Below, piece by piece: positions 4,485-26,349 of a stretch of 64,000 nucleotides of DNA. A model generated the notes under the pieces. It did not search any database. It was not told where the DNA came from and saw only the letters and a list, made by a program, of their open reading frames with translations. The position numbers and the translations under genes are program-made. Every line of letters starts with the position of its first letter. Position 1 is the stretch's first letter. Where the stretch lies: NCBI RefSeq assembly GCF_001194135.2, contig NC_068983.1, positions 99,005,420 through 99,069,419 on the forward strand, written 5' to 3'. This DNA is from Octopus bimaculoides (taxonomy: Eukaryota).

Positions 4485-4492
4485 TCAGATGC
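4485..4492 (-). CDS. Probable last coding exon of host gene (adds C-I-stop; alternative NAGNAG acceptor at 4495 adds S-G-I-stop)
   Basis: Minus-strand ...ctgccatcttag|CAG|GCATCTGA; phase-1 compatible with the donor at 4710; followed by non-repetitive UTR-like sequence. Confidence 0.45.
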
Positions 4493-4709
4493 CTGCTAAG
4501 ATGGCAGGTAATTTCAGATTACATAATGCACAAATCGTGAATAAATTACCATGCTATTAAAACATATGTAGCATGTCAAGTCATCTTTTTACCACACACA
4601 CACACACATATTTGTGTATCCACACACACAGAAACATATATATGTAGTGGGGAAATATATAGGTGTTTTGCAAACTGCAAAAACAAAGATATATTACAAA
4701 AGAACTTAC

Positions 4710-4793
4710 ATGTATTATCCTTCTGTTTTTCTACTTCGTCATCAGATAAATAATTATCTAGAAACTCAAAAGCTTGTGTGGTTACTTTCTGAC
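4710..4793 (-). CDS. Host gene duplicated exon B (GQKVTTQAFEFLDNYLSDDEVEKQKDNT)
   Basis: attgcag|GT...ACAT|gtaagt, 84 nt, phase 1-1, open; paralogous to 5921-6004 with mostly synonymous differences. Confidence 0.9.
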
Positions 4794-5109
4794 CTGCAAT
4801 ACAATGAGATGTTTGTTAATTTGAGATGTTTGAAATGTTATGATGAAAGACATTCTCACATGTAGCAACTGTGTGTAATGTAATGGTATAACTCAGGGAA
4901 AAGAGAATAAGAGTTTATGAGGAGGTTTGTTGAGAGTGAACAATATATAGCTGAAGTTGAAACAGGAGACTTCTTCAGTAAGACTACTATTTATAGAGTT
5001 ATCTTAGCTCAGGATTATGTTAAGTTGATAGAGACCCTTTGGGTCAGGGATCAGAAGGCTCTGCTGCAATTTAGGAAGCAAGTAAGCTTGCAGGTTGTGA
5101 GAAGCATGA

Positions 5110-5335
5110 TGGCATTGTAGTCTTGCACAAGTTTGGCACAAGGCCAGCAGTTCCAGTGCAGAGAGTAAGTTGATTACATCAATACCCAGTGCTAAACTGG
5201 TATTAATTTTATCAACTCTGAAAGGATGAAAGGCAAAATTGACCTTGGTGGAATGTGAACTCAGAACATAAAGATGGACGAAATGCCACTAAGTATTTTG
5301 CCCAGCACAGCAATGATTCTGCCAGCTCACTGCAT
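5110..5335 (-). mobile_element. tRNA-derived SINE, family B
   Basis: Matches the many copies with ggcagaat..ttagca / gagttcaaattcc / ctttcatcctttc / ccttgtgcc blocks. Confidence 0.8.
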
Positions 5336-5399
5336 TGTAGTCTTGTATATATATTGCAATGATGGACAAATACCACTTAGCAGGGATGGGCCACTTTCT

Positions 5400-5760
5400 C
5401 CAGGAATTGTGCTCAGTGTTAATTGCATGAAGATATGAGCTTTAATTGTGTGAGGAATGTGAAGTTGTTATTGTGCAGTCCAGTCCTAGTGGAACAGACC
5501 TATGATCAGAAACTTTCCGACCAAGAGTATCTTTTTATTTGGGTGTGTATCAACACTGGTTATCAAGTGGTGGTGGGTGACAAACAGACACAAAAACACA
5601 CACACACACATGAACGATGAGCTACTTTCAGTTTTACCTCTACCAAATTCACTCACAAGGCTTCAGTTGGCTGGAGGCTATAGTAGAAGACATTTGCTCA
5701 TGCAATAGGGCTGAACCAAGAACTATGTGGTTGGGAAATAAGCTTCTTACCACACAGCCT
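5400..5760 (-). mobile_element. tRNA-derived SINE, family A
   Basis: Reverse complement of the gtgtggtaagaagct...gtgagtggatttggtag...(TG)n...gacaaccgatg family; similar copies near 3370, 10120, 23030, 29765, 35190, 36940, 37730, 46905, 48770, 52025, 58060, 60905 and 62884. Confidence 0.85.
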
Positions 5761-5920
5761 AAATGTTTAATCTAAAGGAACAAATATCAGCAGGAAATGA
5801 TTGGTACTTATTTTATTCATTCAAGAGAAATGAAAAACAAAGTTGCCTTTGATGGAATTTGAACTCAAGACATAAAGGATGATTCTGCCTTAAACTCTGG
5901 ATATATTAAAAACAACTCAC

Positions 5921-6004
5921 TTATAGTATCTTTCTGTTTCTCTGCATCATCATCAGATAAGTAACTGTCAAGAAACTCAAATGCTTGTGTGGTTACTTTT
6001 TGAC
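5921..6004 (-). CDS. Host gene duplicated exon A (GQKVTTQAFEFLDSYLSDDDAEKQKDTI)
   Basis: tgtatttcag|GT...ATAA|gtgagt, 84 nt, phase 1-1, open; not in the ORF track because it lacks its own start. Confidence 0.9.
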
Positions 6005-6472
6005 CTGAAATACAATCAAATATTTAATTATTGAATTAGAACTGATAAAAATATTGATTTTTGATTTAAGCACCATGCTAGAAACTGGCAGAGAGATTGT
6101 GTGATGATGTATAGAAATAGTGACATTTTGCGAAATACTTAAATGTCTGAGACGACTTGTTAATATGATTTGAATTTTTCTGACTATTCTTTTGACTTGA
6201 AAGATTGCCAATAATTATATCTACACAACATTCTGATCAGTTTGATCTCCTTGATCATCATCGGGTCATTTAGTTATGGATGTGTTTGTAGCACCACACT
6301 AAATTTGAACTAACAATATTTATAACTAAACTAAGGGTTCTGATCTGCTAGTAAATTTGTCAGTGGTCCAACAAAAAGTACAAATTTTAGTGTGTACTGA
6401 ACTATTATACAAATCATTTTTCTGTACAGCTCACAGTTTATTACTTACTCTCAAACATCCATGACATCTTAA

Positions 6473-6680
6473 CTCTTTAGCATTTGAACTGGCCATGTCT
6501 AACCAAAATATTTTCCCTGTTTTATGTTCAAAGTGACCAGATCTAACCGTTGACACCAACCCTACAATATCATTCCAAAATTAAACATCATTGAAATCTC
6601 AAAGCTATGAGATAATGCATGATCAATTTGAATAATTAAATAAGCATTACATTTGACAGAGTAATCAGAAGGGTAAAGGG
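6473..6680. mobile_element. piggyBac-like MITE, family P1
   Basis: TTAA|CTCTTTAGCA ... TAAAGGG|TTAA; other copies at 24548-24763, 32578-32797, 41270-41472 and 46352-46571. Confidence 0.75.
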
Positions 6681-7091
6681 TTAAGCACTTCCTCTACTGC
6701 TGCCCTTACATTATACACAACATCCTCTGGAGTAACTTTGTTACCAACATCAAACTCCTTAAACAGGCAGTAGCCACTTGCATCAAGGCCATGCAGTTAT
6801 ACTCACAACTGCACTGGGCAAGACACATTTCCAGGATGGTGGGTCACCTGTCTAAGATGATGGTAAATTCTCTATAGGCCACTATAACAGAAGACCATTA
6901 AAGAAAAGGTACATAGTAAATGCTACAGTACAAGGTAAACCACAGTAGCCATATAAACTCACATAATTACCCTTATATTATGATGAGGGAAGTTATAAAA
7001 CAATTATGAACATTGTTTATTTTCCCTTTCTCAAAATACTAACAAACAAAAAAATAAATACAGTTCTATATTTGAGAGATGAGAAATTGTG

Positions 7092-7318
7092 TACATTTGA
7101 CGGATATTTGTCCTCATCTTGTTTGTTGTTAACACAATGTTTCGGCTGACATACTCTCCAGCCTTCATCAGGTGTCTTGGATAAATTTTGAACTTGGGTT
7201 CTCATTCCTAAGGTATTTTTCGATGTTAGTATTATTATTATTATTATTCAGGTTACTGCCTGGAATTGAACTTGGAATCTTGGGGTTAGTAGCCTGCGCT
7301 CTTAACCACAAAGCCATA
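7092..7318 (-). mobile_element. Family D SINE (tRNA head + (AAT)n + hammerhead-like tail), minus copy of head-to-head pair
   Basis: Reverse complement of 7337-7578 and 14190-14440. Confidence 0.85.
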
Positions 7319-7336
7319 GACTCGTGAGCATGGGTA

Positions 7337-7586
7337 TATGGCGTAGTGGTTAAGAGCATGGGCTACTAACCCCAAGATTCCGAGTTTGATGCTAGGCAGT
7401 GACCTGAACAACAACAACAACAGCAACAGCAGAACAACAACAACAATGAAAAATACCTTAGGAATGAGAACCCAAGTTTGAAATTTCCCCCAAGACACCT
7501 GATGAAGGCTGGAGAGTATATTAGCCGAAACATTGTGTTTACAACAAACAAGATGAGGACAAATATCTGTCAAATGTAAAGAATGT
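7337..7586 (+). mobile_element. Family D SINE, plus copy of head-to-head pair
   Basis: A-box TGGCGTAGTGG, B-box-like GTTTGATGC, (AAC)n linker, CTGATGA-GGCTG..TAGCC-GAAA tail. Confidence 0.85.
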
Positions 7587-7734
7587 AAAAAAAATAAATG
7601 CCTCCATGTTCATATAGCAGACTGGATTTTAATCTCTGTAGTTAAATGGTTCAATAGCAGGAAAATGTAATTTCCTTGCCAACAAATATTTTATACAACT
7701 TAAATGTTAAATAAGCTTTTAAAATATTCTTTCT

Positions 7735-8370
7735 TAAATTTGGTGCAAGGCCAGCAATTTTGAGAGCAAGGGACAGTCAATTATACTGCCCCCATGCTTG
7801 AATGAGACTTATTTTATTAATTCTGAAGGGATGACAGCTAAGTTCTCCATAGTCAATATGGAGAGGTTTGAATTTAGAATGAAAAGAGCCAGAAGAAATG
7901 CTGCTAAGTATCTTGCCTGTCATGCTAATGATTCTGCCAACACACTGCCTTTGAAATATTTGTTTCAAATTTTGGCACAAAATTTTTACATCAACCCTAA
8001 TGCTCAACTGGTACTTATTTTATGAATCCAAAAGAATGAAAGGCAAAGTCAACCTCAGTAGAATTTGAATTCAGAACAAAGAGACAGATGAAACGCTGCT
8101 AAGTATTTTTCCCGGTGTAATAACGATTCTTCCAGCTCGTTGCCTTTAAAATATTGATTTCAAATTTTGGCACGAGGCCAGCAATTTCTGGGGAGTGGGT
8201 CAGTTGATTACATCAACTCCAATGCTCAACTGGTACTTATTTTATCAACCCTGAAAGGATGAAAGGTGAAGTTGACCTCAGCAGAATTTGAACTTAGAAC
8301 ATGAAGACGGATGAAATGCTGCAAAGCATTTTGCCTGGCATGCTAATGATTCTACCAGGTCATTGCCTTT
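7735..8370 (-). mobile_element. Three head-to-tail family B SINEs
   Basis: Three successive units ~7735-7945, 7960-8150 and 8160-8370 with the same conserved blocks. Confidence 0.8.
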
Positions 8371-8417
8371 AAACTATTAAAAGAAAACTGATAAATTGTA
8401 ATAAATCACCAACTTGC

Positions 8418-9020
8418 CTTTTGTTTCTGATTCTGTCACATCACTTATGCTTTCAATACAACTCTGTTCATCTACTGATTTTTCCTGGGCATGAATATCA
8501 ACATTATCTGTTTGATCAGGATTTGAAACAGAACATTCAGCATCAAACTCAAGATCTAGTAATGGATTGACCTTGGCATGTATGCTGAGATCATTATTAC
8601 TGTTGTCCAGGCCAGAATGAGAAGGTGGAAACAATAGTTCAGAGCTGTTGTGTTCACTAATTACTGTGCTCGTGGTTGATTTGGCTAACCGCGGACTGTT
8701 ATTCAGAGATTTCCGTGACAATAGAGATCCTGTTCGACTACTGCCTTTATTTTTAAGAGAAGATTTTGAAGAACCAGATTTTACTGAGAATGACTTAGAT
8801 ATGTTTGATTTTTGAAGGGACCTAGTAAGTTCATTATTGTATCCAGAAAGAGCAGCATTTTCATATGGATAGCTTCTTGTAGGCCTTTGCACTTTGTCGT
8901 CTGGTAATCTGTGTGAAAAGTTTCTCAATACAGGTTGATTTGGTTCGTTATCAGACACATATTCTGTTGGGTAAGCATCATTTGTTTTCAGTAACCTTGC
9001 ACTATTTCGATAGGGTAAAC
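8418..9020 (-). CDS. Host gene large cytosolic-tail exon (201 codons, Ser-rich, contains LLDLE); ends in GC donor
   Basis: Acceptor tttttgaacag|GT, open 603 nt (ORF 8377-8958), phase 1-1, donor AAAG|gcaagt. Confidence 0.9.
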
Positions 9021-9377
9021 CTGTTCAAAAATAGATGAAAAAAAAAGTATTTGAAATGTTCTGAATTAAGTAATTTTATTTTGTATTAAGGAGAAACTGA
9101 ATACAAAGGTTATATTTAAAAATAGAAAATAAAATACAGAATTTTAAAATACATCTTGTGGATGATCTAGGGTGCTTCTGGGGTCTCATGGGGTTTCAAC
9201 ATCAGACCCCATCATCCAGGTGCAGGCATGGGAGTGTGATTAAGAAGTTCATCTCTGAACCATGCGGTCAGGGGACTTGGTCCCATTGCATGAATGCTGT
9301 TGGCTATACAATAGTTGTGGATCAATTGATACCTTGGAAGTGAAATCAGGAGACAAAAGGTGAAGAAGTCTATAGCA

Positions 9378-9432
<55 letters not shown>

Positions 9433-10317
9433 TTTGTGTTTCCCTTCATCTTCAATTGTGTTTGCTGACTATAAATGATAACCTTGTTGTTCCATTGCTT
9501 GCAGTCCACCATAAAACCAAATCCAGGTAGTTCATTGTTTGATAGATTACTACCATTTTTTGGAGACAGGGGTTGGCATCAAGAAGAGCATCTGGCCATA
9601 GAAACTCTGCTCCAATGTAATTTAATGCAACCCATGCAAGCATGGATAAGTGAATGCTCAAATGATAATGATGATGAAAAAAGTAAAGGAATATATCATC
9701 TTTAATATATACACATTTTTTTTTATGTCAGCCTTTGATATTTTCTATCCAAAAAATGATTTTAGCCCAATATTATACACTATTATTTATAGTTTTATAT
9801 GCTTTAAGATTCACTGTTCCTACAAAAAATTATTTCATGTTTTCTCAAAGACTCTGAATTCTTATGATGTCAACAACATACAAATCTCACTGGTAAGAAT
9901 AGAATTTCTAAAATGGAGAAATTCAAAGGATTGCTATGGTCCAATGGCAGAACATCTGTTATGTTTACAGGAAATATGGGTTTGTGTCCCATGGACAGCC
10001 TTCAAATTTTTCTATCCAAAGAGTTTTTAACCCAATATATTTACATGCTATTATTCATAGCCTTATTTGCTTTGAGGTTCACCATTCCTAATAATAATAA
10101 TAATAATACATATATAGATGCAGGTGTGGTTGTGTGGTAAGAAGATTTTTTCTCAACTACATGGTTCTGGGTTCAGTTCCATTGCATGGTACCTTGAGCA
10201 AGTTTTCTACTATAGCCTCAGGCCTATTAAAGTCTTGTGAGTGGATTTGATAGATGGAAACTGAAAGAAGCCCATCGTACACATATATATATATACACGC
10301 ACATACATATATATCAT

Positions 10318-10353
<36 letters not shown>

Positions 10354-12657
10354 CCTGAAATATATGGGGAACAGCTTTTCCTTCCAATTTAATCTTTTTA
10401 TTAAGGTTTTCTCATATATGTGTATCAGATTCTAATGGTTCATACTGCACAATAAAGCTTCCAAATTGCTCTTTATTAATTTCCAGGTTATCTCAGCCTC
10501 ATCTTCAGGATGTTAAGTGGTTTTTGCTTCCCTTTTTATAGTGGGCTCCTTATATCTATAGAGATTTTCTTGCTAGAACTTGACCATATTTGTATCAGTG
10601 GCAGCTTGTGTATAGGCACTTAGAACTGCAGCACCCCTATTTCTACTCGATATTATCGATAACATTCAATATAATGAGTCCTTTTTTTCTTTAATTCTTT
10701 CTATATACTTGTACATTATATAATCCTTAAGCTTAATATCAGTTCTTATACCCTAGTTTATGAAGAAAAATACAAAAATCCTGGTATAGAACTGTGTGCT
10801 TCACAGTTCCAGCAACATGGTGTTTGGCTGTTGTGCATAGGAAGCTTCACACTAGGGAGAGAGGGAGAGAGCACTGCATGAACGGCAGTGCTGACTCTTG
10901 TGTTCTGATGAAAGGTAGTGTTTCTTTTTGACTCCATGTCTGTTGTACTTAAAAGCATGTTTATATTCTTGAATGTGATAAAGTGTAGAATTAGATTATT
11001 ATCCTGCTTCCAGCTTCAGTATTGCTGCCAGGATTTGAAAAATAGGGCACATTTGCCCCCCCCCCCTCCTCCTTATTTTGTGATTTAAGTGGGAATTTTG
11101 GAAAACAAAGGGGAATTCACGTTGGTGTTCAGTAAACAAATTAAACACAATACCTGGCAGTGGTTAAAACGCAAACCAATCAAGTTTATGTATAAATTTT
11201 CTTCTTATATATTTGTTTACTTTTACACAATATTAAAACAGCCCAAAATTTTCTGAAGCAACATCCCCACTAATTTTATCTACGAGCCACCACTGGTGCT
11301 GTATGTTAACTGTAGCCTTGTGTTGCAATATTAATGTTACTTCCATAATCAGTCTTCTATTTCTGTGAGGAATTCTATAAAGTATGGAAATATTTTGTTT
11401 GCTTGCCTATCTAGTTTAGTTTTATGGTGTGTGGTGTAGTGTGTCATAATTTCTCCTTGTTTTAAAAGTATGTGAGTTTATAAAAGAATGTTGTACTTGT
11501 TTACCTAATGCAACAGTTGGAATTATGAAATTTGCAACTTTAAATTTTACAGTCAAATTTGTAAATTACAATGGTCATTCTAAGGTTTACATATTTGCAA
11601 TATGTTTTTAATAAGGAAGATTTTGGTCTTATTATTCTGTAATATATATAACTAGTGTCAGCTTTATGGGTATCAGTTTTTATTGCATGTACTATGAAGT
11701 AAATCTTAGAATCCATCATCAATGTTTACAATGGTTTAANNNNNNNNNNNNNNNNNNNNNNNNNNNNNNNNNNNNNNNNNNNNNNNNNNNNNNNNNNNNN
11801 NNNNNNNNNNNNNNNNNNNNNNNNNNNNNNNNNNNNNNNNNNNNNNNNNNNNNNNNNNNNNNNNNNNNNNNNNNNNNNNNNNNNNNNNNNNNNNNNNNNN
11901 NNNNNNNNNNNNNNNNNNNNNNNNNNNNNNNNNNNNNNNNNNNNNNNNNNNNNNNNNNNNNNNNNNNNNNNNNNNNNNNNNNNNNNNNNNNNNNNNNNNN
12001 NNNNNNNNNNNNNNNNNNNNNNNNNNNNNNNNNNNNNNNNNNNNNNNNNNNNNNNNNNNNNNNNNNNNNNNNNNNNNNNNNNNNNNNNNNNNNNNNNNNN
12101 NNNNNNNNNNNNNNNNNNNNNNNNNNNNNNNNNNNNNNNNNNNNNNNNNNNNNNNNNNNNNNNNNNNNNNNNNNNNNNNNNNNNNNNNNNNNNNNNNNNN
12201 NNNNNNNNNNNNNNNNNNNNNNNNNNNNNNNNNNNNNNNNNNNNNNNNNNNNNNNNNNNNNNNNNNNNNNNNNNNNNNNNNNNNNNNNNNNNNNNNNNNN
12301 NNNNNNNNNNNNNNNNNNNNNNNNNNNNNNNNNNNNNNNNNNNNNNNNNNNNNNNNNNNNNNNNNNNNNNNNNNNNNNNNNNNNNNNNNNNNNNNNNNNN
12401 NNNNNNNNNNNNNNNNNNNNNNNNNNNNNNNNNNNNNNNNNNNNNNNNNNNNNNNNNNNNNNNNNNNNNNNNNNNNNNNNNNNNNNNNNNNNNNNNNNNN
12501 NNNNNNNNNNNNNNNNNNNNNNNNNNNNNNNNNNNNNNNNNNNNNNNNNNNNNNNNNNNNNNNNNNNNNNNNNNNNNNNNNNNNNNNNNNNNNNNNNNNN
12601 NNNNNNNNNNNNNNNNNNNNNNNNNNNNNNNNNNNNNNNNNNNNNNNNNNNNNNNNN

Positions 12658-12690
<33 letters not shown>

Positions 12691-13231
12691 ATTATTGGTT
12701 ATATCTGTTACATATATCTTATCAGTTGTTTATTTGAAATCAACACTGAATGCTTTCCATCAGTGCTTGTTTAAAATTTTGATTTGGCTCATTTTGATGA
12801 ATTGAAAACAATTGAAATAGAATTTTGACAATATCAGTAAATAAATATCTGGGCAAATGATTCTCCAGAAGTCAAAGGAGAGATAATCTATCTAAAAGCT
12901 CATTGAATTTTAGGATATTTTTTCTTAACCTTTCTTAATGTGTATTCTTAGGTATCTTATTTAAGTTTAGCTTATTAAAATGTTCTGGAAAGTTTAAGGA
13001 AGAGTACGATGAGAATCTCTCTGGTCTGATGATGTAATATTTCAGCCAAAACAGACATGGAGTTTGAACAGCCCTTCAGCTGGTCAGCTACTGTCAAACC
13101 ATCTAACCCATACCAGCATGGAAAACAGACACATGATGATGATGATGATGATGATGACTGTTTTAAATTTTAGCTTCAAAATTCTATCAAAGACAAAATA
13201 TTGTTAATGAAAGATCTGAGTAAAAGTTTAC

Positions 13232-13357
13232 CTGCATGAGAAAGAATAAAACCATCATTGTAATAAGCTCTGGGTTCACGGTAATTGCCCATGATATCTG
13301 GAATTTGTTGGCTGTGATACATACGAAGATTGCCTTCATAAACATACCGACCTTGCA
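13232..13357 (-). CDS. Host gene Tyr-rich exon (VQGRYVYEGNLRMYHSQQIPDIMGNYREPRAYYNDGFILSHA)
   Basis: ttttttccag|TG...GCAG|gtaaac, 126 nt, phase 1-1, joins in frame on both sides. Confidence 0.9.
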
Positions 13358-14085
13358 CTGGAAAAAATTAATTCAGTTTTTTTACTCACTATGTTATTTA
13401 TGAAAAATACTTTTAGATGTTTTAAAATCAATAATGTCATAGAGTAGTTTATAGTCTGAGTTCATATGATCAATATAAGAAGAAAATGGTAATATTATGA
13501 TTTCTTAAGACAGTTAACTTCATCTCCAGTAAATAAAAGCTTTTTTTCAAAATTTATATCCATATAATGCTATACAATTGGTTTGATTTCTGATAGTCAT
13601 AAAACGATCTTACTTCCAGCAGTGTACATAGTATAAGATTGGATACAAGGAAGGAACTTTTATTTTTACATAAAAGACACCATTCTAATCCACTGGCAAA
13701 AAAAAAACAAACATAATTAACCTTAATTTAGAAATAAAAGCTCCTGGTTTGAATCTAGTCTAGTATTGAGTATTCATCCAGAAATATAACACCTGATGAT
13801 GAAAAGCAGTTTAGTTGTAAAACTTAAATTCTTTCATTTCTAAAGATGAAGTTAACAGTCTAAAAAAAAATTACAATCTTACTAACAGCTTATGTTGGAT
13901 GTGCTGGAAAATCCAAATTCAATTAGTTAGACAAGGATCAATTTTTGAGAATTTATATTATTTGTGCCAATTCTAAAAAAAAATTTATTTGAGTACATAT
14001 TCTTCTATTGACTCCTCAGGCTGTTCAAAGCTTTGTGAGTGGATTGGATAGTTATAAACTGAAAGAAGCCCATCACAATTATATA

Positions 14086-14123
<38 letters not shown>

Positions 14124-16647: not shown

Positions 16648-16975
16648 ATGTGAAGTTGCGTGGCTTAGTGGTTAGGGTATTCACCTTACAATCATAAGGG
16701 CGTAAGTTCAATTCCCGGCGATCGTTGTGTCCTTGAGCAAGACACTTTATTTCACGTTACTCAGTCCTCTCAGCTGGCAAAAGTGAGTGGTACCTGTATT
16801 TCAAAGGGCCGGTCTTGTCACACTCTGTGCTATGCTGAATCTCCCTGAGAACTATGTTAAGGGTACATGTATTTGTGTAGTGCTCAGCCACTTGTTCATT
16901 AATTCCAGAAGCAGGCTGTTCTGTTGATGAAATCAACTGGAACCCTCATCACCATAACTGATGGAGTGCCAGTTA
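16648..16975 (+). mobile_element. tRNA-derived SINE, family C variant with long central domain
   Basis: tggcttagtggttagg A-box, gttcaattcc B-box, gtgtccttgagcaagacac core; reverse copy at ~34780-35090; related copies at 16215-16470 (-), 17160-17410, 25718-26000, 30440-30660 and 57270-57522. Confidence 0.8.
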
Positions 16976-18194
16976 GAAGAGGAAGAATGTACTGTGGAAG
17001 CAGGACAGCTTCAGGTGGGTTGGTATTAAAAGAATTAAATATATAACATTTCTAAGGAAACCTAAGACATTAAAAAATTGGACAGATTATCTCATAGGAA
17101 TTGTACCTCATATCTATGGAAGGCTGCACTTTTTTCTGTGTGTGTGTGTGTGTGAGTGGGGGGAGCATGTGGTTTAGTGGTTAGGGTGTTGGATTCATGA
17201 TCATATGATTTTGGCTTAGATTCCTGGACCAGGTGATGCATAGTTGTTCTTGAACAAAACACTTCATTTCACATTGCTCCAGTTCACTCAGCTGGCAAAA
17301 ATGTGTAATCTTGCAATGGACTAGAATCCAATCCAGTGGGGGAATATATACACCACAGAATCCGGGGAAATCAGTCATTTGAACCTATGGCTTGTGAAGG
17401 ACCTTTGATCCTTTGGGTATGTATGTATGTGTGTATGTATGTATGTATATATATATATATATATATATNNNNNNNNNNNNNNNNNNNNNNNNNNNNNNNN
17501 NNNNNNNNNNNNNNNNNNNNNNNNNNNNNNNNNNNNNNNNNNNNNNNNNNNNNNNNNNNNNNNNNNNNNNNNNNNNNNNNNNNNNNNNNNNNNNNNNNNN
17601 NNNNNNNNNNNNNNNNNNNNNNNNNNNNNNNNNNNNNNNNNNNNNNNNNNNNNNNNNNNNNNNNNNNNNNNNNNNNNNNNNNNNNNNNNNNNNNNNNNNN
17701 NNNNNNNNNNNNNNNNNNNNNNNNNNNNNNNNNNNNNNNNNNNNNNNNNNNNNNNNNNNNNNNNNNNNNNNNNNNNNNNNNNNNNNNNNNNNNNNNNNNN
17801 NNNNNNNNNNNNNNNNNNNNNNNNNNNNNNNNNNNNNNNNNNNNNNNNNNNNNNNNNNNNNNNNNNNNNNNNNNNNNNNNNNNNNNNNNNNNNNNNNNNN
17901 NNNNNNNNNNNNNNNNNNNNNNNNNNNNNNNNNNNNNNNNNNNNNNNNNNNNNNNNNNNNNNNNNNNNNNNNNNNNNNNNNNNNNNNNNNNNNNNNNNNN
18001 NNNNNNNNNNNNNNNNNNNNNNNNNNNNNNNNNNNNNNNNNNNNNNNNNNNNNNNNNNNNNNNNNNNNNNNNNNNNNNNNNNNNNNNNNNNNNNNNNNNN
18101 NNNNNNNNNNNNNNNNNNNNNNNNNNNNNNNNNNNNNNNNNNNNNNNNNNNNNNNNNNNNNNNNNNNNNNNNNNNNNNNNNNNNNNNNNNATAT

Positions 18195-18560
18195 AATACA
18201 CGCTCACGTGGTCACACCAGCTAATCCTGTCTCCATTCATCAAACACGAACTTCTGGATTCTACCTTCTTTCATTCTGGATTTATTCTTTCTGGACTGTT
18301 TTACTCTGAACTCTACACCCTCCGGCTGCACCTCTCCTACCCACGGATTACACTGGACCCATCTTCTGATTGGAAATCGCCTCAATATACCACGACGTCT
18401 AAAAAACTTTTGAACTTTTGACTCCGTATTCTTTCTGTTGATGGGCGTAGCTCGAAACGTTAAAGACTTTCTGTATTCCCGAACGTCAAACTAATACATC
18501 CTTTTGTTGTTTACACCACCTGTCCTCGTCTGTTGTTGTTTTTTTTTCGTACATTCTCCC
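18195..18560 (+). mobile_element. Penelope-like element 3'-end remnant with degenerate minimal hammerhead motif (18430-18466)
   Basis: TCTTT-CTGTTGA-t-GGGC/GCTC-GAA-ACGT-T-AAAGA architecture; pyrimidine-rich tail ending at (AT)n. Confidence 0.55.
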
Positions 18561-19042
18561 ATATATATATATATATATGTATATATACACATACATACAT
18601 ACAGACACACACACCAGGGACGCCGAGGTGGGCAAGGTAGGCAGGGCCTACCTTGAATAACATAGATTGATAGCAACATTTTCCTCTCATGGCAAAATAT
18701 GCACATAATTCAATAAAATTATGAAGTTTGGTCTGATTACTAAGCATAAAATGCAAAAAGAATCATGTTTTTGTAGATTAGGTCGACTTAATTCGCCCCC
18801 TGCTTTTTAATCACAGTATTTAAGCTATGCATACTACTGCTGTAGTACACATGCTGAGAACATTTCTACAATAACGTTTTCTTTACATGCTATAAAGGCA
18901 GAAATAGATCTGCCTACAACTGACTCCCGCACCTGTGTTTCGGTTATTTTTTGTGTATTTTCCTATATAAAGGTTGCCAACTGCCTATCCTGAGTAATTA
19001 CTGACAGCATGTACCTGATATACACACACACATATATATATG

Positions 19043-19104
<62 letters not shown>

Positions 19105-19105
<1 letters not shown>

Positions 19106-21501
19106 CTATACTATAATGGAGAAAGCTGCTTATTAATTAGGTATGTAACAATTACTAAAAGAAAGCAATATTAAAAGCTTGATCATCTGGAAATATTTAT
19201 AAAAATTCATGTTCTAAGAAATTTCCTATAATTTTGATTTCTGAAGTTTATTGAATTTTTTTAACTTCAAATTCTCATAAATTTAGATATTCATTTCATT
19301 CACTACGGAGTAGATTTTAATGTTTAATAATGAACATCATTAATTTGTTGCAGGCTACGTTTTTATTTGCAACAGTCTTTCATTCTCGCTCACCTCTATT
19401 TTTTATTAATGATAATTTAATAACAGCTATATAACTTTGATACAAGACACAATTTCAAAAATATTATCAGTTTTCAGAGTTTGTTAAATGAATATTTTTG
19501 ATAAAATGAAAATTTTTTAATATACTGGTATAATTTTAAAGTTATTTTGTGTTTAATGACTGCATGCTATTATNNNNNNNNNNNNNNNNNNNNNNNNNNN
19601 NNNNNNNNNNNNNNNNNNNNNNNNNNNNNNNNNNNNNNNNNNNNNNNNNNNNNNNNNNNNNNNNNNNNNNNNNNNNNNNNNNNNNNNNNNNNNNNNNNNN
19701 NNNNNNNNNNNNNNNNNNNNNNNNNNNNNNNNNNNNNNNNNNNNNNNNNNNNNNNNNNNNNNNNNNNNNNNNNNNNNNNNNNNNNNNNNNNNNNNNNNNN
19801 NNNNNNNNNNNNNNNNNNNNNNNNNNNNNNNNNNNNNNNNNNNNNNNNNNNNNNNNNNNNNNNNNNNNNNNNNNNNNNNNNNNNNNNNNNNNNNNNNNNN
19901 NNNNNNNNNNNNNNNNNNNNNNNNNNNNNNNNNNNNNNNNNNNNNNNNNNNNNNNNNNNNNNNNNNNNNNNNNNNNNNNNNNNNNNNNNNNNNNNNNNNN
20001 NNNNNNNNNNNNNNNNNNNNNNNNNNNNNNNNNNNNNNNNNNNNNNNNNNNNNNNNNNNNNNNNNNNNNNNNNNNNNNNNNNNNNNNNNNNNNNNNNNNN
20101 NNNNNNNNNNNNNNNNNNNNNNNNNNNNNNNNNNNNNNNNNNNNNNNNNNNNNNNNNNNNNNNNNNNNNNNNNNNNNNNNNNNNNNNNNNNNNNNNNNNN
20201 NNNNNNNNNNNNNNNNNNNNNNNNNNNNNNNNNNNNNNNNNNNNNNNNNNNCTTGATGTAGGAAATGGTAACATTTCTGTTGAATAAAGCCTAGGTGAAT
20301 TCAAAATCAAACTACCCAATGACCTTTGCTTTGAAAGTGGTACTTTTTCAGATCTATGTGATTTTGTATATACTGACCTCAAAAATAACTTCCCAAACCC
20401 TGAGTGGCTTGCAAACAGAACTATTGTTACTCCAACAAATGAAGCAACACATTTTGTGAATGATCTTCTGTTGACCAGGATCCCTGGTGAGCTAAAAATA
20501 TACAGAAGCTCAAATACAGTTGATAATGAAACTCTGTACCCAATTGAGTTCATCAACAAACTTACACCATCAGGGTTTCCACCACACTTTCTCAATCTGA
20601 AGAAAAAATTATGCATAATGCGTCTGTGGCACATGCTACATCATTGTCAGTTTATATGATCATGTTATTGAGGTTGAGGTTGCTTCTGGTCCTTATGCAA
20701 GATCAACTCTACTAATCCCAAGAATACCACATGTGTCTCAATAAATGGAATTTCTATTCACATTTAAACGCAAACTGTCAAGCCAGCTTTTATCTTGACA
20801 TGCAACAAGACACAGGGACAGACTTTTGAACAAATTGGAATATATCTTCTAACACAATTCTGCTCAAATGGTCAGCTGTATGTTGCATTATCTAGAGTTC
20901 AAAAGAAGGCTAATATAAAAATATTAGCTGAGAGAAATGGAAACAGTATGATTACTAACAATTGTGTCTATAAGGAGATATTACTTTAAAGCAAAATATG
21001 CTTTTTAGCAAATTTCAGCAAATAGAATTCACGCATAAAATCATATGTAAAGTAACATATATTTGTGTGGAATTAAATTGTTTTGGCATATTTCAACACA
21101 TACCAAATGAATGATATCGTTATATTAGATTATTCTAAATTTGGGTATATTTGAAAAATTAAGGAAACGCCATTCCCATGTGTTCTCACAGCACCAGACT
21201 TTTGTGTGTGTGTGTGTGTATCCCTCCCTCCCCCTATCTATCTATTTATCTATCTATCTATGCTCAGTAAGTTCTATCAATTATTAATGATAGATATATA
21301 TAACAGATTGACTCTTTAAAAAACAGAGATTATGATTGTGATAAAATAATGAAAGCAATATTTACTGAGCAAGTGAGCACTAATATACAAAGAAATAATT
21401 AGATGTAAAATATCATAAAAATGGTTAGAACTGGGAATCAAATGTGGGAATATTATCGAGTGGCTAGCAGAAAACTGCCTGGAGGGTGGTCTTTCTGCTA
21501 G
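19105..21501 (+). mobile_element. Non-autonomous Helitron with both termini
   Basis: A|TCTATACTATAA 5' end at 19105; 3' hairpin CTAGCAGAAA...TTTCTGCTAG ending CTAG|T at 21501; internal Pif1-type helicase remnant. Confidence 0.85.
20252..20989 (+). pseudogene. Helitron RepHel helicase C-terminal fragment (frameshifted)
   Basis: YPIEFINKLTPSGFPPH, TCNKTQGQTF, GQLYVALSRV and NCVYKEILL* match Helitron Pif1-family helicase motifs. Confidence 0.9.
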
Positions 21502-22044
21502 TATATATATTGTATCTGTTTGTGTATGTATTACTATGTCAGTATGTGTGGTTGTATTTAAGTGAGAATCCTTTTAAATGGAGTACTACAAAATTCTCTT
21601 AAAGCCCTAATAAGGTTAAATAATATAGCATGTCTTTTCTGTTAGTCAAGTCTGTTATCTAATTACTGTGATCCCTTTAATCTTAAGTCAATTGTCATCC
21701 TACATTTTCTATAAATTTCAAGATGAGTCAAATATTGCAGTTGATTATTTTGTTAATTTCATTAATGAAGTTTTATAGAAATGATCAATGCCACCTGTTA
21801 TTGAGATGCTGAAGGGTAGCACAAAGATAATCTGTTAAATTGAAGTACAATTAAATCAAGAAATAAGTTTTAGCCAAGGAGACAGTTTAAGCTTCCTCAT
21901 TTGGATTAATTAGGAGTTCTGAAATCTGTAAATCTTTGAAACAATAACAATTACATTTTGAAGATGTTTCAGCATTTTAATCTCATCAAGACCCAACATT
22001 ATAGTTATATATATTGATTTAACTGCTCAACTATTCATCTAATG

Positions 22045-22254
22045 CAAGGGTTGGTGAACCAGGGTAAATTACCCCAAGTGGGGTTAAAATGAAATTCTCA
22101 TGGGTAATGAGGACTCATTAGACATAAGTAAAATTATATAAAAAATGTATTCCATGTTATCTATGATTTTCTTTCATTTGAATCAAGGGGTAACATTAGC
22201 GTAAATAAATATATTTTGGAGTAATTGGTTAAAAAAGCTCCCCAAACCTGCCTG
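22045..22254. mobile_element. hAT-like MITE
   Basis: CAAGGGTTGGTGAA left end, ...CCCCAAACCTG right end, near-identical 8-bp flanks ATCTAATG/ATCTAACA. Confidence 0.5.
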
Positions 22255-22269
22255 ATCTAACACACGAGA

Positions 22270-22790
22270 CCTAATGCATCTGTACACCAGATATTCCCTG
22301 CTATACTTATGCTGTACAGATGTAGAGTCTATTGATCCTGCTACTCATCACTCACATCTGGATCTCAGTAGTAAATACTTCCAGTTGTTTCAGCTCAGGG
22401 TCTCTCCTCACCTGAGTTCTTATGTCACTGTTCCACAAAATCCTCCAACCAGCATCAGTTACTGACCATCTCATTTCTTATAGGGAAGACAACTCCTTAA
22501 TATCACCTATCTCTGAAGCCATCATTCTAAGAGACTTTGATGGACACAATTCTATTTTGCTTTCACACTTCTGCAATATTGCTGCTGCAGAAAGTGAATG
22601 TTTTCGCCACTCTCAAATGTTTGTATTACTTGTATGTATCCACTCCTATCCCTGTTCCTGACAAATGTACCAACACATAAACTGCCCTTGATCTCTCTCA
22701 CACCTTCAAAGCCAGTTAGCACCATCTCTGCACCAAATGGATTCTCTGATCACTGCATTATTATTGATTTCATCACATTTTTAATGTCCA
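22270..22790 (+). mobile_element. LINE (CR1/L2-type) APE endonuclease remnant
   Basis: IILRDFDGHN (GDFN-like) and SAPNGFSDHC (SDH catalytic motif) in adjacent frames. Confidence 0.7.
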
Positions 22791-23389
22791 CTTTTCCATG
22801 CTCACATGGATTGGACAGAGTTTATTGAGGCAGATTTTCTAAGAGGGATGCTCTTCCTGTTATCAACCCTCATCTGTTTTCAAGTAAGGTGATATTTCCC
22901 CATGGCCAGACATGTTTTTGCAGAATATTGAAAATTCAATTATGACAATCACATGATGTCAAGACAAGGAGACACAAACATTCTCACACATACACATGTA
23001 CGCACACACACACACACAGATACACATACATATGACAGGATTCTTTCAGTTTCTGCCTGCCAAATCCACTCACAAGGCTTTGGTCAGTCAAGAGCTCAAG
23101 GCTGTAGTAAATACTTGCCCTAGGTGCCATGCAGTGAGACTGAACCCAAAACTACATGAGGCTGGAAAGCAAACTCCTTAACCACATAGCCACATCTGTA
23201 TCAGCTGATGTTACATACTTAACAGTTACATACTTAACAGTCACTTACTACAAAACATTCACCCCATCAATTCTAACCCTCTGGATGGATCCCAGCCTGT
23301 TCTATACTGATTATCCTTAGCAGTAAATGTGTTATACCCCACTTCCACTTTATTTACATGCAGGTATGTTAGTGTGTGAATATATAAAT

Positions 23390-23644
23390 CAGTGTTTCTC
23401 AACCATTTTTTACCTGTGGACCCCTTTGATTCCTATTTTACTCTACTGGACCCTGTTAGCCATTCTATGTTTAAAAAAATCATATATTTTCATAATTGAA
23501 TATTATTAGGAAATGTATAACAAAAAATTGTTAAAATATTTTGTGAATTGTAGAAGTACAAGCAATTCTATTGCACATAAATTTTAACAACAAAATCTTA
23601 TATGGATCCCCAAGGGTTGTAGGGACCCTGGTTGAGAACAGTTG
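23390..23644. mobile_element. hAT (Charlie-like) MITE
   Basis: TIRs CAGTGTTTCTCAACC / GGTTGAGAACAGTTG, 8-bp TSD ATATAAAT/GTATAAAT; same family at 35868-36316 and 59209-59443. Confidence 0.8.
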
Positions 23645-24876
23645 GTATAAATGAACCATAATACCACTGTGTGAATGCTTATATTTTTTGCTGCTGAGTC
23701 AGAAGAAGGGTAGTGTCCATGAACTTTTTCAGAGTCTCCAAAACTGATGTGAGGAAGGGGAAATTATCTTCAAACTGGAGACCTAACTCAAATGCTTTCA
23801 GTAGAGTTGACTGAACTAATTAAGCCTACCCAACAAGAAGTATTAAATGTCAGCTAAACAGGTGACCAAAATCCTCTTCTTGAGCATGTTCTTCCTTCCA
23901 CAATCTTCTTACAACCATAGTCCATAACTGCAGGACATCTACCAATCTGTTGCTCTCATTTCTAAAACTCAAAGGTTAAGGATATTGATGCTATTAATTA
24001 CCATCGTCACTTTGAGATCCTTTCCTTTCTCACTTATCACATGGAACCATGACAACTGGAGATATACTCCTATGACATTCACCTGTGAGAAATTAGGCAA
24101 AAGCAATGTTTTCACACTTGATTAGCATATGAAAAATTTCTAGTCAAGTTACCCTCCTGTTGTGCGCATTCCATTTCTTATTTCTTGGATGAGATGCTTC
24201 ATGTCAGTTCTACCATTACAATATATAGTGAAAGGGCCCTCTTTGATCACTTTCTTATCTATTCTACTGTATTTCAAGTTTCAGTAATGTTTATTTGATT
24301 GTTGTTTTTTTATATTAACATAACAAATACTTGTAAAATAATATATATTAGTGACAGAGGCAGTAGTAATACTGATAGGTAATATTAAATGTGGATGTTC
24401 TGTTAGAACAAACCAAACTGCAGCAGATATCACAAGGGAAACTCTCATATTGGCTTTTAGTGCAAAATGCATGCTTGTTTATATAACTAGAAGGGAGATA
24501 CAAATACTAGGTAAATATTCAAGATAAATAGGCTTTAACTACTTTAACCCATTAGCATTCAAACTATATCCAGCTCAAATATTCTACCTGCTTTACATCC
24601 AAAGTGGCCAGATCCAACCTCTCATACCTACTCTACAAGATTATTTTTAAAATAAATAATCACATCATTGAAATCTCAAAGCTACAAAATAATGCATTAT
24701 TAATTTTTTTAAATATGAATAAATAAGCGTTACATTTGACAGAATAATCTGAATGCTAAAGGGTTAAATTGTACCTACCCACAATAGATATAGCAGTAAA
24801 CCATAATAATATAAGTCTTACATGCAAAAACTAGTGAGTTGCTCCCTGCCAAATTAGATTACAAAGTAAGACTTAC

Positions 24877-24974
24877 CCGCAGCAAAAGTAGAAAATTACT
24901 GCAGAAACGATAACTATGATGAGAATCAAGCAGACACAGACTATCAGAACGATGATGATCTTCTCATTTTCCAT
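24877..24974 (-). CDS. Host gene first coding exon: N-terminal transmembrane helix (MENEKIIIVLIVCVCLILIIVIVSAVIFYFCCG)
   Basis: Exon 24877-24977: ttattattgcag|GAAATGG ... GCGG|gtaagt; phase-2 end joins 14953 to give FCCGPRSKRKRR. Confidence 0.85.
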
Positions 24975-26289
24975 TTCCTGCAATAATAAGATAACATATT
25001 AAAACCGATGACTTTGGAAACAATGACAAGCATAAAACATGGTGCTCTATCTATCATGATAATTATATAAGGAAGAAAGAAAATTATATAAAAACTGTTC
25101 ATGGAGATGTGATGTAATAAGAAAGCTATTAAAATTATTTCAATTTTAAATGTCAAGTCTTTTTTTTTATTTATTTGTTTATTTTCTGAAAGCTATTATA
25201 TATTTGTCAAATAATCCGAGTTACTGTCCAGTTATGGTTTATCTTCTTTGCCTTGTCATTGAATACTAAATTACTACAGTATATCAAACTATTGTTCATG
25301 TATATTCACCAACTGGCAGAATGTACACAGTGAAAATCAGTGGAAACAAAAATGTGAAGCATCTGAGTGGTCACTTGCCCTTCACCTTGCTAAAAATATC
25401 AGCTAAATCTCTCTAAAATTACACCCTAGTATCTTAACAAAACACACACACACACTGGATAATATATTCCTAAATGTCTTCTGCCTTTTAGTACCAGGCT
25501 TAAAAAAAAAAAGTACGTACTAAGGTTGGTTCATTCAACTAAAACCCTTCAAAGCAGTGCAATGGCAAGTATAACATGATTCACAATTGAACGTACTGTG
25601 TTACCCAGGATCAGTGATGAATGAATCAGTAATAAACAAGCACAGCCGTATTTGTAAATGACTTATTTAATCAAATCATTGGTTATTCCGAAATTGTTTA
25701 CAGTGTAATGTGGTTGGTGAAGGTGCATAACTCAGTGGTTAGAGTGTTGGACTCCCAGACCAGGCTGTGTGTTGTGTTCTTGAGCAAGACACTTTATTTC
25801 ATGTTGCTCCAGTTCACTCAGCTGTAGAAATTAGTTACAATGTCCCTGGTGCCAAGCTGTATCATGCTTTGTCTTTGCCTTGGATAACATCACTGGCATG
25901 GAGAGGAGAGGCTGGTATACATGGGAAACTGCTGGTCTTTCATAAAGTGGACTTGTGCCTCAGAGGGTAACTTTCCAAGTGCAATCCCATGGTCATTCAT
26001 GATTGAAAAGAGTCTTTACCTTTTACCCTAATGTGGTTGATATTAGGAAGGGTATCCAGCAGTAGAAACCATGTCAGAAATGACATTAGAACTTGGTGCA
26101 GCTTTGTGGCTCACTGGATCCAATCAACCAACGCCAACATAGAAAACAAATGTTAAATGATGATGTTGATTATGATGATGTTGATGTTCCTTATTTAACT
26201 CTTCCAAAAAACTTTTCTTATGTCAAATCCCATTAGTGAGTACATAAGCAACATTTTTATCATTACTTCTATGCAAATTAGCCTCTTAC

Positions 26290-26349
26290 CTAATGATCAG
26301 CCACTTAACAATTGAACATTCAGAACTGAATTGTTAAATTGAGATATTC
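26290..26349 (-). other. Probable 5'UTR exon of host gene
   Basis: atatacag|GAA...TTAG|gtaaga, 60 nt, stops in all three frames; splicing places TAG two codons before the ATG. Confidence 0.6.

Follow-up and report, generated by a model that had tools for sequence, protein, structure and literature searches.

The window analysed here, a 64,000-nucleotide stretch of Octopus bimaculoides chromosome CM046603.1 identical in sequence to the assembly, carries a real minus-strand gene, whose product RefSeq already lists as uncharacterised. This gene, LOC106877405, is protein-coding, with a 426-aa product and seven coding exons distributed across ~22 kb, and its annotated CDS spans 21,949 bp, exactly 24974..3026. 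The corrected spliced protein was 100% identical to O. bimaculoides XP_052822305 (P0003), with RefSeq and UniProt entries in agreement. The features of the locus are as follows.

40949..40984, minus strand: putative alternative upstream coding first exon (coding part at least), peptide MRSQKSSCNKNK
26290..26349, minus strand: originally predicted, putative 5′ UTR exon, cag/G...CATTAG/gtaaga, reading TAG-GAA-ATG, with good splice signals
24877..24977, minus strand: coding exon 1, acceptor ...attgcag/GAA ATG, CDS start at 24974, ending GG/gtaagt; it encodes MENEK, the transmembrane (TM) residues 6-30 (24959-24885) and CC (24884-24879)
14685..14953, minus strand: coding exon 2, 269 nt, with the PRSKRKRR polybasic stop-transfer, MPKVGSSRLW (an LPKVGSxGLW-type block) and DAYYEL
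13232..13357, minus strand: coding exon 3, 126 nt, GRYVYEGNLRMYHSQQ...AYYNDGF, a Tyr-rich conserved block
8418..9020, minus strand: coding exon 4, 603 nt, Ser/Asn-rich low-complexity tail with LLDLE; GC-AG intron, AAAG/gcaagt
5921..6004, minus strand: coding exon 5, 84 nt, copy one, QKVTTQAFEFLDSYLSDDDAEKQKDTIS
4710..4793, minus strand: coding exon 6, 84 nt, copy two, QKVTTQAFEFLDNYLSDDEVEKQKDNT
3026..3042, minus strand: last coding exon (coding part), ...ttaattag/AT GAA TCA TCA AGA TAA, giving (Y)ESSR and the stop

The original prediction had assembled seven exons into ~423 codons, and six of these (24974-24877, 14953-14685, 13357-13232, 9020-8418, 6004-5921 and 4793-4710) proved exact, with in-frame joins, AG acceptors and GT donors, save for the GC donor of exon 4 (gcaagt), which O. 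sinensis shares and for which Argonauta has GT. The motifs read from these exons on the minus strand were likewise found in place: MENEK (24974-24960), FYFCCG (24893-24876), PRSKRKRR (14952-14929), YYEL (14763-14752) and LLDLE (8562-8548). Only the predicted last micro-exon was wrong. The candidate at 4485..4492 on the minus strand (GC ATC TGA, ending the protein in CI) keeps the frame and has a plausible acceptor, yet it is unused in the annotated proteins of O. bimaculoides and two orthologues, all of which end ...Y/S-E-x-x-R; the RefSeq C-terminus, YESSR, comes from 3042-3026, and the gene therefore extends past the lower limit originally drawn for it. All four assembly gaps within the predicted interval (11740-12657, 14124-14133, 17469-18190 and 19574-20251) lie in introns 1-3, and a fifth below it (3564-3677) is likewise intronic. 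In O. sinensis (L002) and Argonauta hians (L001), where the orthologous loci are free of gaps, the identical set of seven coding exons is present, including exon 1 and the 17-nt final exon, with lengths of 98, 269 or 254, 126, 603 or 540, 84, 84 and 17 nt, and no additional coding exon was found in either. For O. bimaculoides itself, annotation is the source for the 5′ exons and for the joint use of exons 5 and 6. The latter two exons are 85% identical in DNA, and their similarity extends into the flanking intron.

The gene had also been predicted to encode essentially no ectodomain, on the strength of the stop-containing exon at 26290..26349. This exon is 92.6% conserved in O. sinensis, the level of the surrounding non-coding DNA, and has no match in Argonauta. 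The alternative first exon at 40949..40984 (ATG AGG TCT CAG AAA AGC TCT TGC AAC AAA AAT AAG/gtatgg) is in phase 0 and would splice to the acceptor at 24977; its peptide exactly matches the sequence that extends the N-terminus in O. vulgaris isoform CAI9720049.1 (P0004), and no recorded alternative N-terminus adds more than the 13 residues of this isoform. RNA-seq contigs of the cuttlefish Sepia esculenta place an in-frame stop immediately 5′ of the ATG: intronless ORFs of 401 and 403 aa, with in-frame stops 5′ of the ATG, lie on contigs of 1.6-1.8 kb, and the Sepia esculenta transcriptome is given as the source of two of the runs. A long upstream coding ectodomain was sought and not found, and given this cuttlefish stop and the 13-residue maximum the prediction of nearly no ectodomain, with five residues outside, stands.

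The protein comprises a 5-residue N-terminus, a 25-residue hydrophobic helix, a juxtamembrane CC, an Arg/Lys run and a tail of ~393 residues. Its sole hydrophobic segment covers residues 6-30 (Kyte-Doolittle 3.8), in agreement with an AF2 helix at residues 2-31 (pLDDT 83-95); the remainder is predicted to be disordered (pLDDT <50), with C-terminal helices reaching 53-64, and AF2 runs with 3 and with 18 sequences agreed. Together with a juxtamembrane Cys that is invariant in 18/18 family members, these results bear out the single-pass, N-terminally anchored layout first proposed. Since the helix is flanked by acidic residues on its N side (MENEK) and by strongly basic residues on its C side (PRSKRKRR), an N-out/C-in orientation is favoured by the positive-inside rule.

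Although no orthologue had been recognised at first, searching 1.84 billion representatives with a profile returned 17 matches, 16 of which share a common architecture and motifs; the other, P0021, was judged spurious from its sequence. All named matches whose source was looked up are mollusc proteins. By sequence, the octopus protein belongs to an unnamed family with members in cephalopods, gastropods and bivalves, all of them annotated as "uncharacterized", for example O. sinensis LOC115209825, Lottia gigantea LOTGIDRAFT_230124 and Aplysia californica LOC101863806, and among bivalves Ostrea edulis LOC125668794 and Pecten maximus LOC117321971. No Pfam or PDB relatives of the family were found. 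Its members share, in order, a short N-terminus, the TM helix, the Cys and polybasic run, LPKVGSxGLW, a YHSQQ block (RxYHSQQ), a long, variable central stretch of low complexity and, at the C-terminus, the helix AFxFLDxYLSD[DE]; they measure 400-426 aa in cephalopods versus 430-670 aa elsewhere. Across 18 members, columns C32, P74, K75, V76, L81, W82, Y136, S138, G366, A401, F402, F404, L405 and Y408 are invariant, and Y97, Y129, H137 and Q139 are conserved in at least 90%. No identifiable short linear motif matched the conserved blocks. The AF.FL..Y motif occurs in 24/24 members, and within the family octopods alone have two copies of it (exons 5 and 6), as they alone have LLDLE, whereas the gastropod blocks ATDSMKLLAKNKTDDQK, GDIYAVP, NPIYQEV and a terminal SPPxSP are absent from cephalopod members. 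The gene is under purifying selection, with a whole-gene dN/dS of 0.17 versus O. sinensis and 0.21 versus Argonauta; regional values were 0.07 for the C-terminal repeats, 0.11-0.16 for the N-terminal 180 residues and, highest, 0.33-0.49 for exon 4.

One might expect from this layout a functional analogue of the vertebrate adaptors LAT, PAG1 and LIME1, in which Src-family kinases would phosphorylate tail Tyr, Grb2, Csk, Crk or Shc would dock through SH2 or PTB domains and LLDLE would act as a clathrin box leading to endocytosis; we consider this rather unlikely. PAG1/Cbp, with LAT, LIME1 and NTAL, forms the vertebrate "TRAP" class, and Pfam presumably includes models for LAT and PAG; no homology to vertebrate transmembrane adaptors was found and the octopus protein shows no detectable sequence relation to PAG1/Cbp or to any Pfam family. 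To our knowledge, LPKVGSxGLW, RxYHSQQ and AFxFLDxYLSD[DE] have no TRAP counterpart. The architectural likeness is close: PAG has a 16-aa ectodomain, a 397-aa tail with ten Tyr and a palmitoylated Cys beside its TM helix (PMC2213442; PMC3492796), and the octopus protein similarly combines a very short exoplasmic N-terminus (5 aa versus 16), one N-terminal TM anchor with a Cys directly after it and a domain-free cytoplasmic tail of ~390-400 aa (18 Tyr versus 10), its phosphorylation and acylation being putative. Indeed, the predicted 17 tail Tyr were recovered, with 15 of them at residues 87-225 of the 423-codon model, a clustering (15 in 139 residues) above that of shuffled sequences (P=0.0007). 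YxN motifs number four against 1.56 expected (P=0.06), and two of them (YYN and YEN) are retained in Argonauta. However, YxxΦ motifs are depleted (one against 3.65 expected), and a scan of the octopus protein found no ITAM, ITIM, NPxY, PPxY or LPxY. The LLDLE motif, proposed as a functional clathrin box, is confined to octopods, being absent from two decapodiform-type transcripts and from all gastropod and bivalve members, and its single match is within chance (0.16 expected, P=0.15). Nor did Tyr prove specially conserved, with 13/18 (72%) shared between Octopus and Argonauta versus a tail background of 70%. Gastropod members do conserve GDIYAVP (YxxP type) and NPIYQEV (NPxY type), but cephalopods lack Tyr at both positions, and no Csk-type or Grb2-type docking site is conserved across the mollusc family. 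Neither LLDLE, YxxΦ nor Tyr conservation between Octopus and Argonauta thus supports the tyrosine-signalling and endocytosis scaffold first proposed, while a phosphotyrosine role stays alive because Y136 and Y408 are invariant, Y97 and Y129 are at least 90% conserved, and gastropods keep YAVP and NPIY.

An auxiliary or sorting subunit, whose TM helix would pair with a channel, receptor or transporter and whose C-terminal acidic cluster with a CK2-type site (LSDDE) would route the complex among the Golgi, the endosome and the surface, seems unlikely to us. Acidic-cluster motifs steer furin-type cargo, and the invariant C-terminal S-D-[DE]-[DE] conforms to the established CK2 consensus. Database similarities, all of them weak, are moreover limited to the TM and juxtamembrane regions of single-pass proteins that act as partners or receptors (sodium-channel beta-2/beta-4, CD4 and syndecan, and Pfam EphA2_TM in 9/18 members); all have E ~0.002 or weaker, fall below curated thresholds and are of a generic kind for a TM helix with a basic stop-transfer. 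Non-cephalopod members carry a GxxxG-like TM (AIIGGSIAG), a common helix-pairing motif, but this is missing in cephalopods, and the octopus protein lacks an acidic dileucine, a YxxΦ cluster and a PY motif. The Commissureless/PY-motif sorting adaptors (Comm, NDFIP, PRRG4) are alike in being single-pass and acting through short motifs in a domain-free cytoplasmic tail; however, the octopus protein lacks PPxY/LPxY, and its Pfam Comm match (E=0.14; 12.8 bits, cutoff 27) is sub-threshold and not seen in the other 17 members. A secreted prohormone-like precursor, with a cleaved N-terminal signal peptide and convertase sites at RSKR/RKRR, is highly improbable. These furin-type sites do follow the hydrophobic segment directly, and V23-S24-A25 fits the -3/-1 rule for possible cleavage at residues 23-25, but the hydrophobic run, at 25 residues, is much longer than the core of a signal peptide, acidic rather than basic residues precede it and no further repeated peptides flanked by dibasic sites occur. 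The rest is Ser/Asn/Asp-rich with only three more Cys, and thus shows no disulphide-rich pattern, while the post-helix Cys and polybasic pattern is family-invariant, as for a stop-transfer and acylation site.

The best reading, which we regard as probable, is that the octopus protein is a lipid- and TM-anchored scaffold acting through short motifs. "Scaffold" is a broad class, hard to falsify unless partners are named. The hydrophobic helix would be a reverse signal anchor (N-out, C-in) set by its acidic N and basic C flanks, the invariant juxtamembrane Cys may be S-acylated, and the tail would form a membrane-tethered scaffold whose active parts are short blocks kept across Mollusca. Candidate blocks are LPKVGSxGLW, (V)Y-x-G-N-x-R-x-YHSQQ and the acidic amphipathic C-terminal helix GK-x-[IV]T-x-x-AFxFLDxYLSD[DE][DE], which would bring cytosolic partners to the inner membrane face, probably under the control of Tyr and Ser phosphorylation; a TRAP-like role through phosphotyrosine is possible. 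LLDLE and YxN, as motifs confined to octopods, would be lineage-specific additions at most, while in octopods the exon duplication of the C-terminal helix may have created a bivalent binding site.

The original prediction had joined seven exons at 4485-26349 into a single-pass membrane protein. A protein search matched LOC115209825 of O. sinensis/vulgaris and an orthologue in Argonauta hians. The same cluster contains O. bimaculoides LOC106877405 (XP_052822305, XP_014781785, UniProt A0A0L8GFK2), whose protein equals the predicted product except at the C-terminal end, which reads YESSR rather than CI. The prediction was essentially right, save for a wrong last exon and an annotation that it had missed. 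Its five peptide landmarks all lie at the predicted positions on the minus strand, and the reverse complement of window positions 1-34974 is exactly the retrieved O. bimaculoides locus (assembly GCA_001194135.2, chromosome CM046603.1), gaps included.

Peptide landmarks, coding exons and assembly gaps of LOC106877405
24974-24960, minus strand, peptide landmark MENEK
24893-24876, minus strand, peptide landmark FYFCCG
14952-14929, minus strand, peptide landmark PRSKRKRR
14763-14752, minus strand, peptide landmark YYEL
8562-8548, minus strand, peptide landmark LLDLE
24974-24877, minus strand, coding exon 1, read from the sequence with scripted joining
14953-14685, minus strand, coding exon 2, read from the sequence with scripted joining
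13357-13232, minus strand, coding exon 3, read from the sequence with scripted joining
9020-8418, minus strand, coding exon 4, GC donor AAAG/gcaagt
6004-5921, minus strand, coding exon 5, read from the sequence with scripted joining
4793-4710, minus strand, coding exon 6, read from the sequence with scripted joining
3042-3026, minus strand, last coding exon, ...ttaattag/AT GAA TCA TCA AGA TAA, matching the annotated end YESSR
17469-18190 and 19574-20251, gaps in intron 1
14124-14133, gap in intron 2
11740-12657, gap in intron 3

Exons 1-6 have AG acceptors throughout, GT donors save at exon 4, and compatible phases. The donor of intron 4 (8412-8417, minus strand) makes this a GC-AG intron; the GC is kept in O. 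sinensis, and Argonauta has gtaagt. With 4492-4485 ('CI*') as its last exon the predicted model does yield 423 residues; that exon is in frame, and it is ruled out by the annotated protein, whose end is encoded at 3042-3026, and by both orthologues. The CDS is annotated as covering 21,949 bp, which is exactly 24974..3026, so that the gene ends about 1.5 kb past the predicted lower limit, the protein has 426 residues, and intron 6 holds a fifth gap (3564-3677). The orthologous O. sinensis and A. hians loci contain no N at all, and exact splicing reconstructs their annotated proteins, which are collinear with the window product, from the same seven coding exons of 98, 269 or 254, 126, 603 or 540, 84, 84 and 17 nt. 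Exons hidden in the assembly gaps are thereby ruled out, and no coding sequence is missing.

Most of the gaps seen in ORF listings are flanked by TA/TATG-type microsatellites (translated IYIYIY), on both sides for 11740-12657, 14124-14133, 17469-18190, 47779-48748, 49605-50241 and 54885-55208 and on one side for 3564-3677, with none seen at 19574-20251; these flanks suggest that the assembly breaks at simple repeats. Adjoining the last-named gap, within intron 1, are two short ORFs at 20456-20989 (plus strand), …IPGELKIYRSSNTVD… and …CNKTQGQTFEQIGIYL…LYVALSRV…, which we take to resemble a PIF1/Helitron-type helicase in its C-terminal part and which gave no Pfam match at E up to 0.001. Elsewhere in the window, reverse-transcriptase fragments mark decayed retroelement copies at 40227-40571 (minus strand; RVT_1, E=1.8e-6) and 55758-56213 (plus strand; RVT_1, E=1.2e-15), and the reverse-transcriptase-like ORF pieces at 53329-53733, 55278-55622 and 56533-57036 had no Pfam match.

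At the 5′ end, an annotated O. vulgaris isoform (CAI9720049.1) carries 13 additional N-terminal residues, MRSQKSSCNKNKE. An upstream exon in the window, 40949-40984 on the minus strand, encodes MRSQKSSCNKNK, identical to this extension. Its GT donor is in phase 0, as is the acceptor at 24977 that it would join, so that the predicted range probably falls short of the gene's upstream end by at least 16 kb. These 13 residues are the longest alternative N-terminus found; a long coding ectodomain spliced into 24977 was not. The 5′ UTR exon that had been proposed at 26349-26290 does have good splice signals and the terminal TAG, and its status stays putative, since comparison is uninformative here: identity to O. 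sinensis stays at about 92% all across the non-coding DNA, and no match was seen in Argonauta. Just upstream of this putative exon, at 26642-27235 (plus strand), a 197-aa ORF with internal repeated units (…GASQAVLATTTLKRCFLHATCMGAS…) gave no Pfam match and probably represents a repeat element.

The original prediction had recognised no orthologue, a view overturned by the cephalopod, gastropod and bivalve relatives that protein and profile searches recovered. A profile built from the octopod trio of proteins, run as a full HMM scan against 1.84 billion representatives, returned 17 proteins at E up to 1e-3, of which 16 have the same layout. The other, a long, repetitive, multi-TM protein (P0021, E=4.5e-4), was judged on reading its sequence to be a spurious match through the TM segment only. 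Profile E-values of the members range from 8e-71 to 1e-6, and the named ones come from Argopecten irradians, Ostrea edulis, Gigantopelta aegis, Lottia gigantea, Littorina saxatilis, Nucella lapillus and Lymnaea stagnalis, to which a second search added Pecten maximus, Aplysia californica, Physella acuta, Plakobranchus ocellatus, Bulinus truncatus and Elysia. Every named member is labelled uncharacterized or hypothetical. P0021 aside, all hits of the octopod-profile scan were mollusc or unnamed family members, with no non-mollusc relative among them, and word-indexed searches with an 18-sequence profile and with a trimmed profile of the conserved blocks likewise returned none. A literature search on the locus names and accessions of six members found no paper. 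The gene has an annotation but no characterisation, and its family, shared by cephalopods, gastropods and bivalves, has neither a name nor a Pfam model.

The members are united by plan and by short motifs. The 18-sequence alignment shows an N-terminal TM segment, supported by hydropathy and AlphaFold2, behind at most 10 residues and ahead of a Cys and a polybasic run, and it places LPKVGSxGLW and RxYHSQQ blocks within the first ~150 residues and a GK-x-[IV]T-x-x-AFxFLDxYLSD[DE] helix at the C-terminus. Invariant in this alignment are C32, P74, K75, V76, L81, W82, Y136 and S138, with H137 and Q139 at least 90% conserved; invariant or nearly so are Y97, Y129, the blocks L-P74-K75-V76-G-S-x-G-L81-W82 and R-x-Y136-H-S138-Q-Q, and the C-terminal G366-K-x-[IV]-T-x-x-A401-F402-x-F404-L405-D-x-Y408-L-S-D-[DE]. 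The AF.FL..Y core occurs in 24/24 members examined and is present twice solely in the three octopod proteins. Its two copies lie in exons 5921-6004 and 4710-4793 (minus strand), which are 84 nt each, of the same phase and 85% identical in DNA, with similarity reaching into the flanking intron ends, and therefore represent a tandem exon duplication. Both Octopus and Argonauta have it, and Sepia-type transcripts and all other molluscs have a single copy; the duplication of the exon carrying the most conserved motif is octopod-specific.

The gene is real, selected and expressed. Comparison with O. sinensis gives a dN/dS of 0.17, and comparison with Argonauta 0.21; the ratio has its low points in the C-terminal repeats (0.07) and over the first 180 codons (0.11-0.16) and its high point in the Ser-rich middle (0.33-0.49). 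Two family members of 403 and 401 aa (P0007 and P0037) are encoded without interruption on contigs of 1.6-1.8 kb that were assembled from sequencing runs, and because two of the runs are given as Sepia esculenta transcriptome data (SRR20545814, PMC9538352; SRR31864754, PMC11917092) these contigs represent spliced mRNA. Both contig types have an in-frame stop a few codons 5′ of the ATG, and their ORFs start MSTDEVTII... and MASEEVTII..., with the hydrophobic helix following directly. Two further Logan contigs of about 1.2 kb (P0005 and P0006) carry exon 4 of another Octopus species at 88-89% identity; their translations run past the exon-4 donor into the intron (…ETRGKSMIYCSLSVFF), like the raw ORF of the window, which marks them as genomic contigs rather than transcripts.

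The overall architecture that had been predicted, a TM anchor with a tiny ectodomain and a long disordered tail, holds. The sole hydrophobic segment spans residues 6-30 (Kyte-Doolittle mean 3.8 over 19 residues) and is preceded by five residues. AlphaFold2 gives a helix at 2-31 (pLDDT 83-95) and pLDDT <50 for the remainder, except for low-confidence helices on the two C-terminal repeats (53-64), a result that is alike with 3 or 18 aligned sequences. The helix is flanked by the net acidic MENEK on its N-terminal side and the strongly basic GPRSKRKRR on its C-terminal side, and by the positive-inside rule this suggests an N-out, C-in reverse signal anchor. With an ectodomain of five residues and a stop 5′ of the ATG in the Sepia mRNAs, there is indeed no ligand-binding domain outside. 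Residues 31-32 are CC, and the Cys motif is found with an invariant C32 in 18/18 members. Three gastropod proteins (P0017, P0018 and P0036, including Aplysia LOC101863806) lack the TM helix: they begin MDC[LFI]..., directly at the juxtamembrane Cys with its polybasic run. Either a conserved alternative first exon gives an isoform anchored purely by lipid or charge, or the same annotation error was made repeatedly.

This layout is closest to that of the vertebrate transmembrane adaptors, a likeness of plan without homology. For example, the ectodomain of PAG has 16 residues and its 397-aa tail carries ten Tyr (PMC2213442), and Cbp/PAG has two palmitoylation sites just after its TM segment (PMC3492796). 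What defines this class biochemically is acylation, phosphorylation of the tail tyrosines by Src/Syk-family kinases and recruitment of SH2 proteins. No Pfam model exceeded threshold for the octopus and Argonauta proteins (searched at E up to 10) or for the 18 members (E up to 0.1), and none of the matches at these limits was to a transmembrane adaptor model. Sub-threshold matches, driven by the TM segment or by low complexity, were to the TM/juxtamembrane models EphA2_TM, Syndecan and TMEM154 or, by chance, to Arm_3 and Comm, and none was treated as real. Commissureless and other PY-motif adaptors also differ from the octopus protein: the Comm match is below threshold (E=0.14), and neither the O. 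bimaculoides nor the A. hians protein has a [PL]P.Y motif for Nedd4-type WW binding. Sequence searches of the PDB, whether the query was the single protein or the profile, gave nothing or TM-only matches (sodium-channel beta subunits, CD4 and syndecan-2, at E of 0.02 or weaker). Very little weight falls on a secreted neuropeptide or prohormone precursor, for which one would look for a cleavable signal peptide with a basic n-region and a 7-15-residue core, and for several dibasic-flanked peptides; here a hydrophobic run of 25 residues follows an acidic N flank, and dibasic convertase sites occur at residues 35-41 only.

The original prediction had noted that 15 of the 17 tail tyrosines cluster in the first half; they fall within residues 87-225, a clustering that beats composition-preserving shuffles (P=0.0007). 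The clathrin and YxxL inference is not supported by tests of conservation and chance. LLDLE, at 318-322 in a region of pLDDT <50, is found in the three octopod proteins, including that of Argonauta, whereas neither the two decapodiform-type proteins nor any other mollusc of the family has it; no part of the tail is less constrained than the one that holds it, and its one match compares with 0.16 expected by shuffling (P=0.15). YxxL at Y97 (YYEL, YSGL, YHQL) is kept in cephalopods and not in other molluscs, and YxxΦ is rarer than expected (1 vs 3.65). The octopus protein contains no ITAM, ITIM, NPxY, PPxY, acidic dileucine, DPF/W or strict LIR. YxN is mildly enriched (4 vs 1.56 expected, P=0.06), and two of its copies are common to Argonauta. 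Tyrosines are conserved between Octopus and Argonauta at 13/18, no better than their neighbours (70% overall), and four are conserved across the three mollusc classes. Gastropod members have conserved GDIYAVP and NPIYQEV blocks, where cephalopods lack the Tyr; we assume that these resemble Crk-type (pYxxP) and PTB-type (NPxY) sites.

The tail is disordered and keeps three short blocks in all three mollusc classes sampled, and from such sequence features we consider a general membrane scaffold rather probable. The N-out/C-in anchor would be strengthened by S-acylation and by the basic run on the inner leaflet, and the tail would hold a series of short docking motifs tethered to the membrane. 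Among these the acidic amphipathic C-terminal helix, the most constrained site (dN/dS 0.07), would be bivalent in octopods, and phosphorylation of Tyr and Ser may regulate the whole, as is plausible from the conserved Y, R-x-x-S and S-D-[DE]-[DE] sites. A phosphotyrosine version of this scaffold on the lines of the vertebrate adaptors, argued by analogy, seems unlikely, and a sorting or auxiliary-subunit role is quite improbable. The phosphotyrosine version would mean that molluscs evolved their own palmitoylated transmembrane adaptor, without sequence kinship to LAT or PAG, organising Src/Csk/Grb2/Crk-type phosphotyrosine signalling, a proposal that we hold to be doubtful. Such an adaptor might act through Y97, Y129, Y136 and Y408, and in gastropods through YAVP and NPIY, and it would, no less tentatively, have in the AFxFLDxYLSD[DE] helix a previously undescribed docking motif.

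As things stand, this is one among many uncharacterised lineage-restricted genes. Regardless of its function, the annotation gains a Pfam-less family in three mollusc classes with its invariant motifs named, a corrected last exon and a record of the octopod exon duplication. To our knowledge, nearly all described transmembrane adaptors come from immune cells of vertebrates, and little has been charted, as far as we know, of the way in which invertebrates, lacking them, recruit Src-family, Csk and Grb2-type proteins to the membrane. If true, the adaptor proposal would describe convergence on this protein class in Lophotrochozoa. Should the family do an adaptor's job, it would be a case of a scaffold that arose convergently from nothing but short motifs, and it would offer a way into signalling close to the membrane in molluscs, the cephalopod nervous system included.
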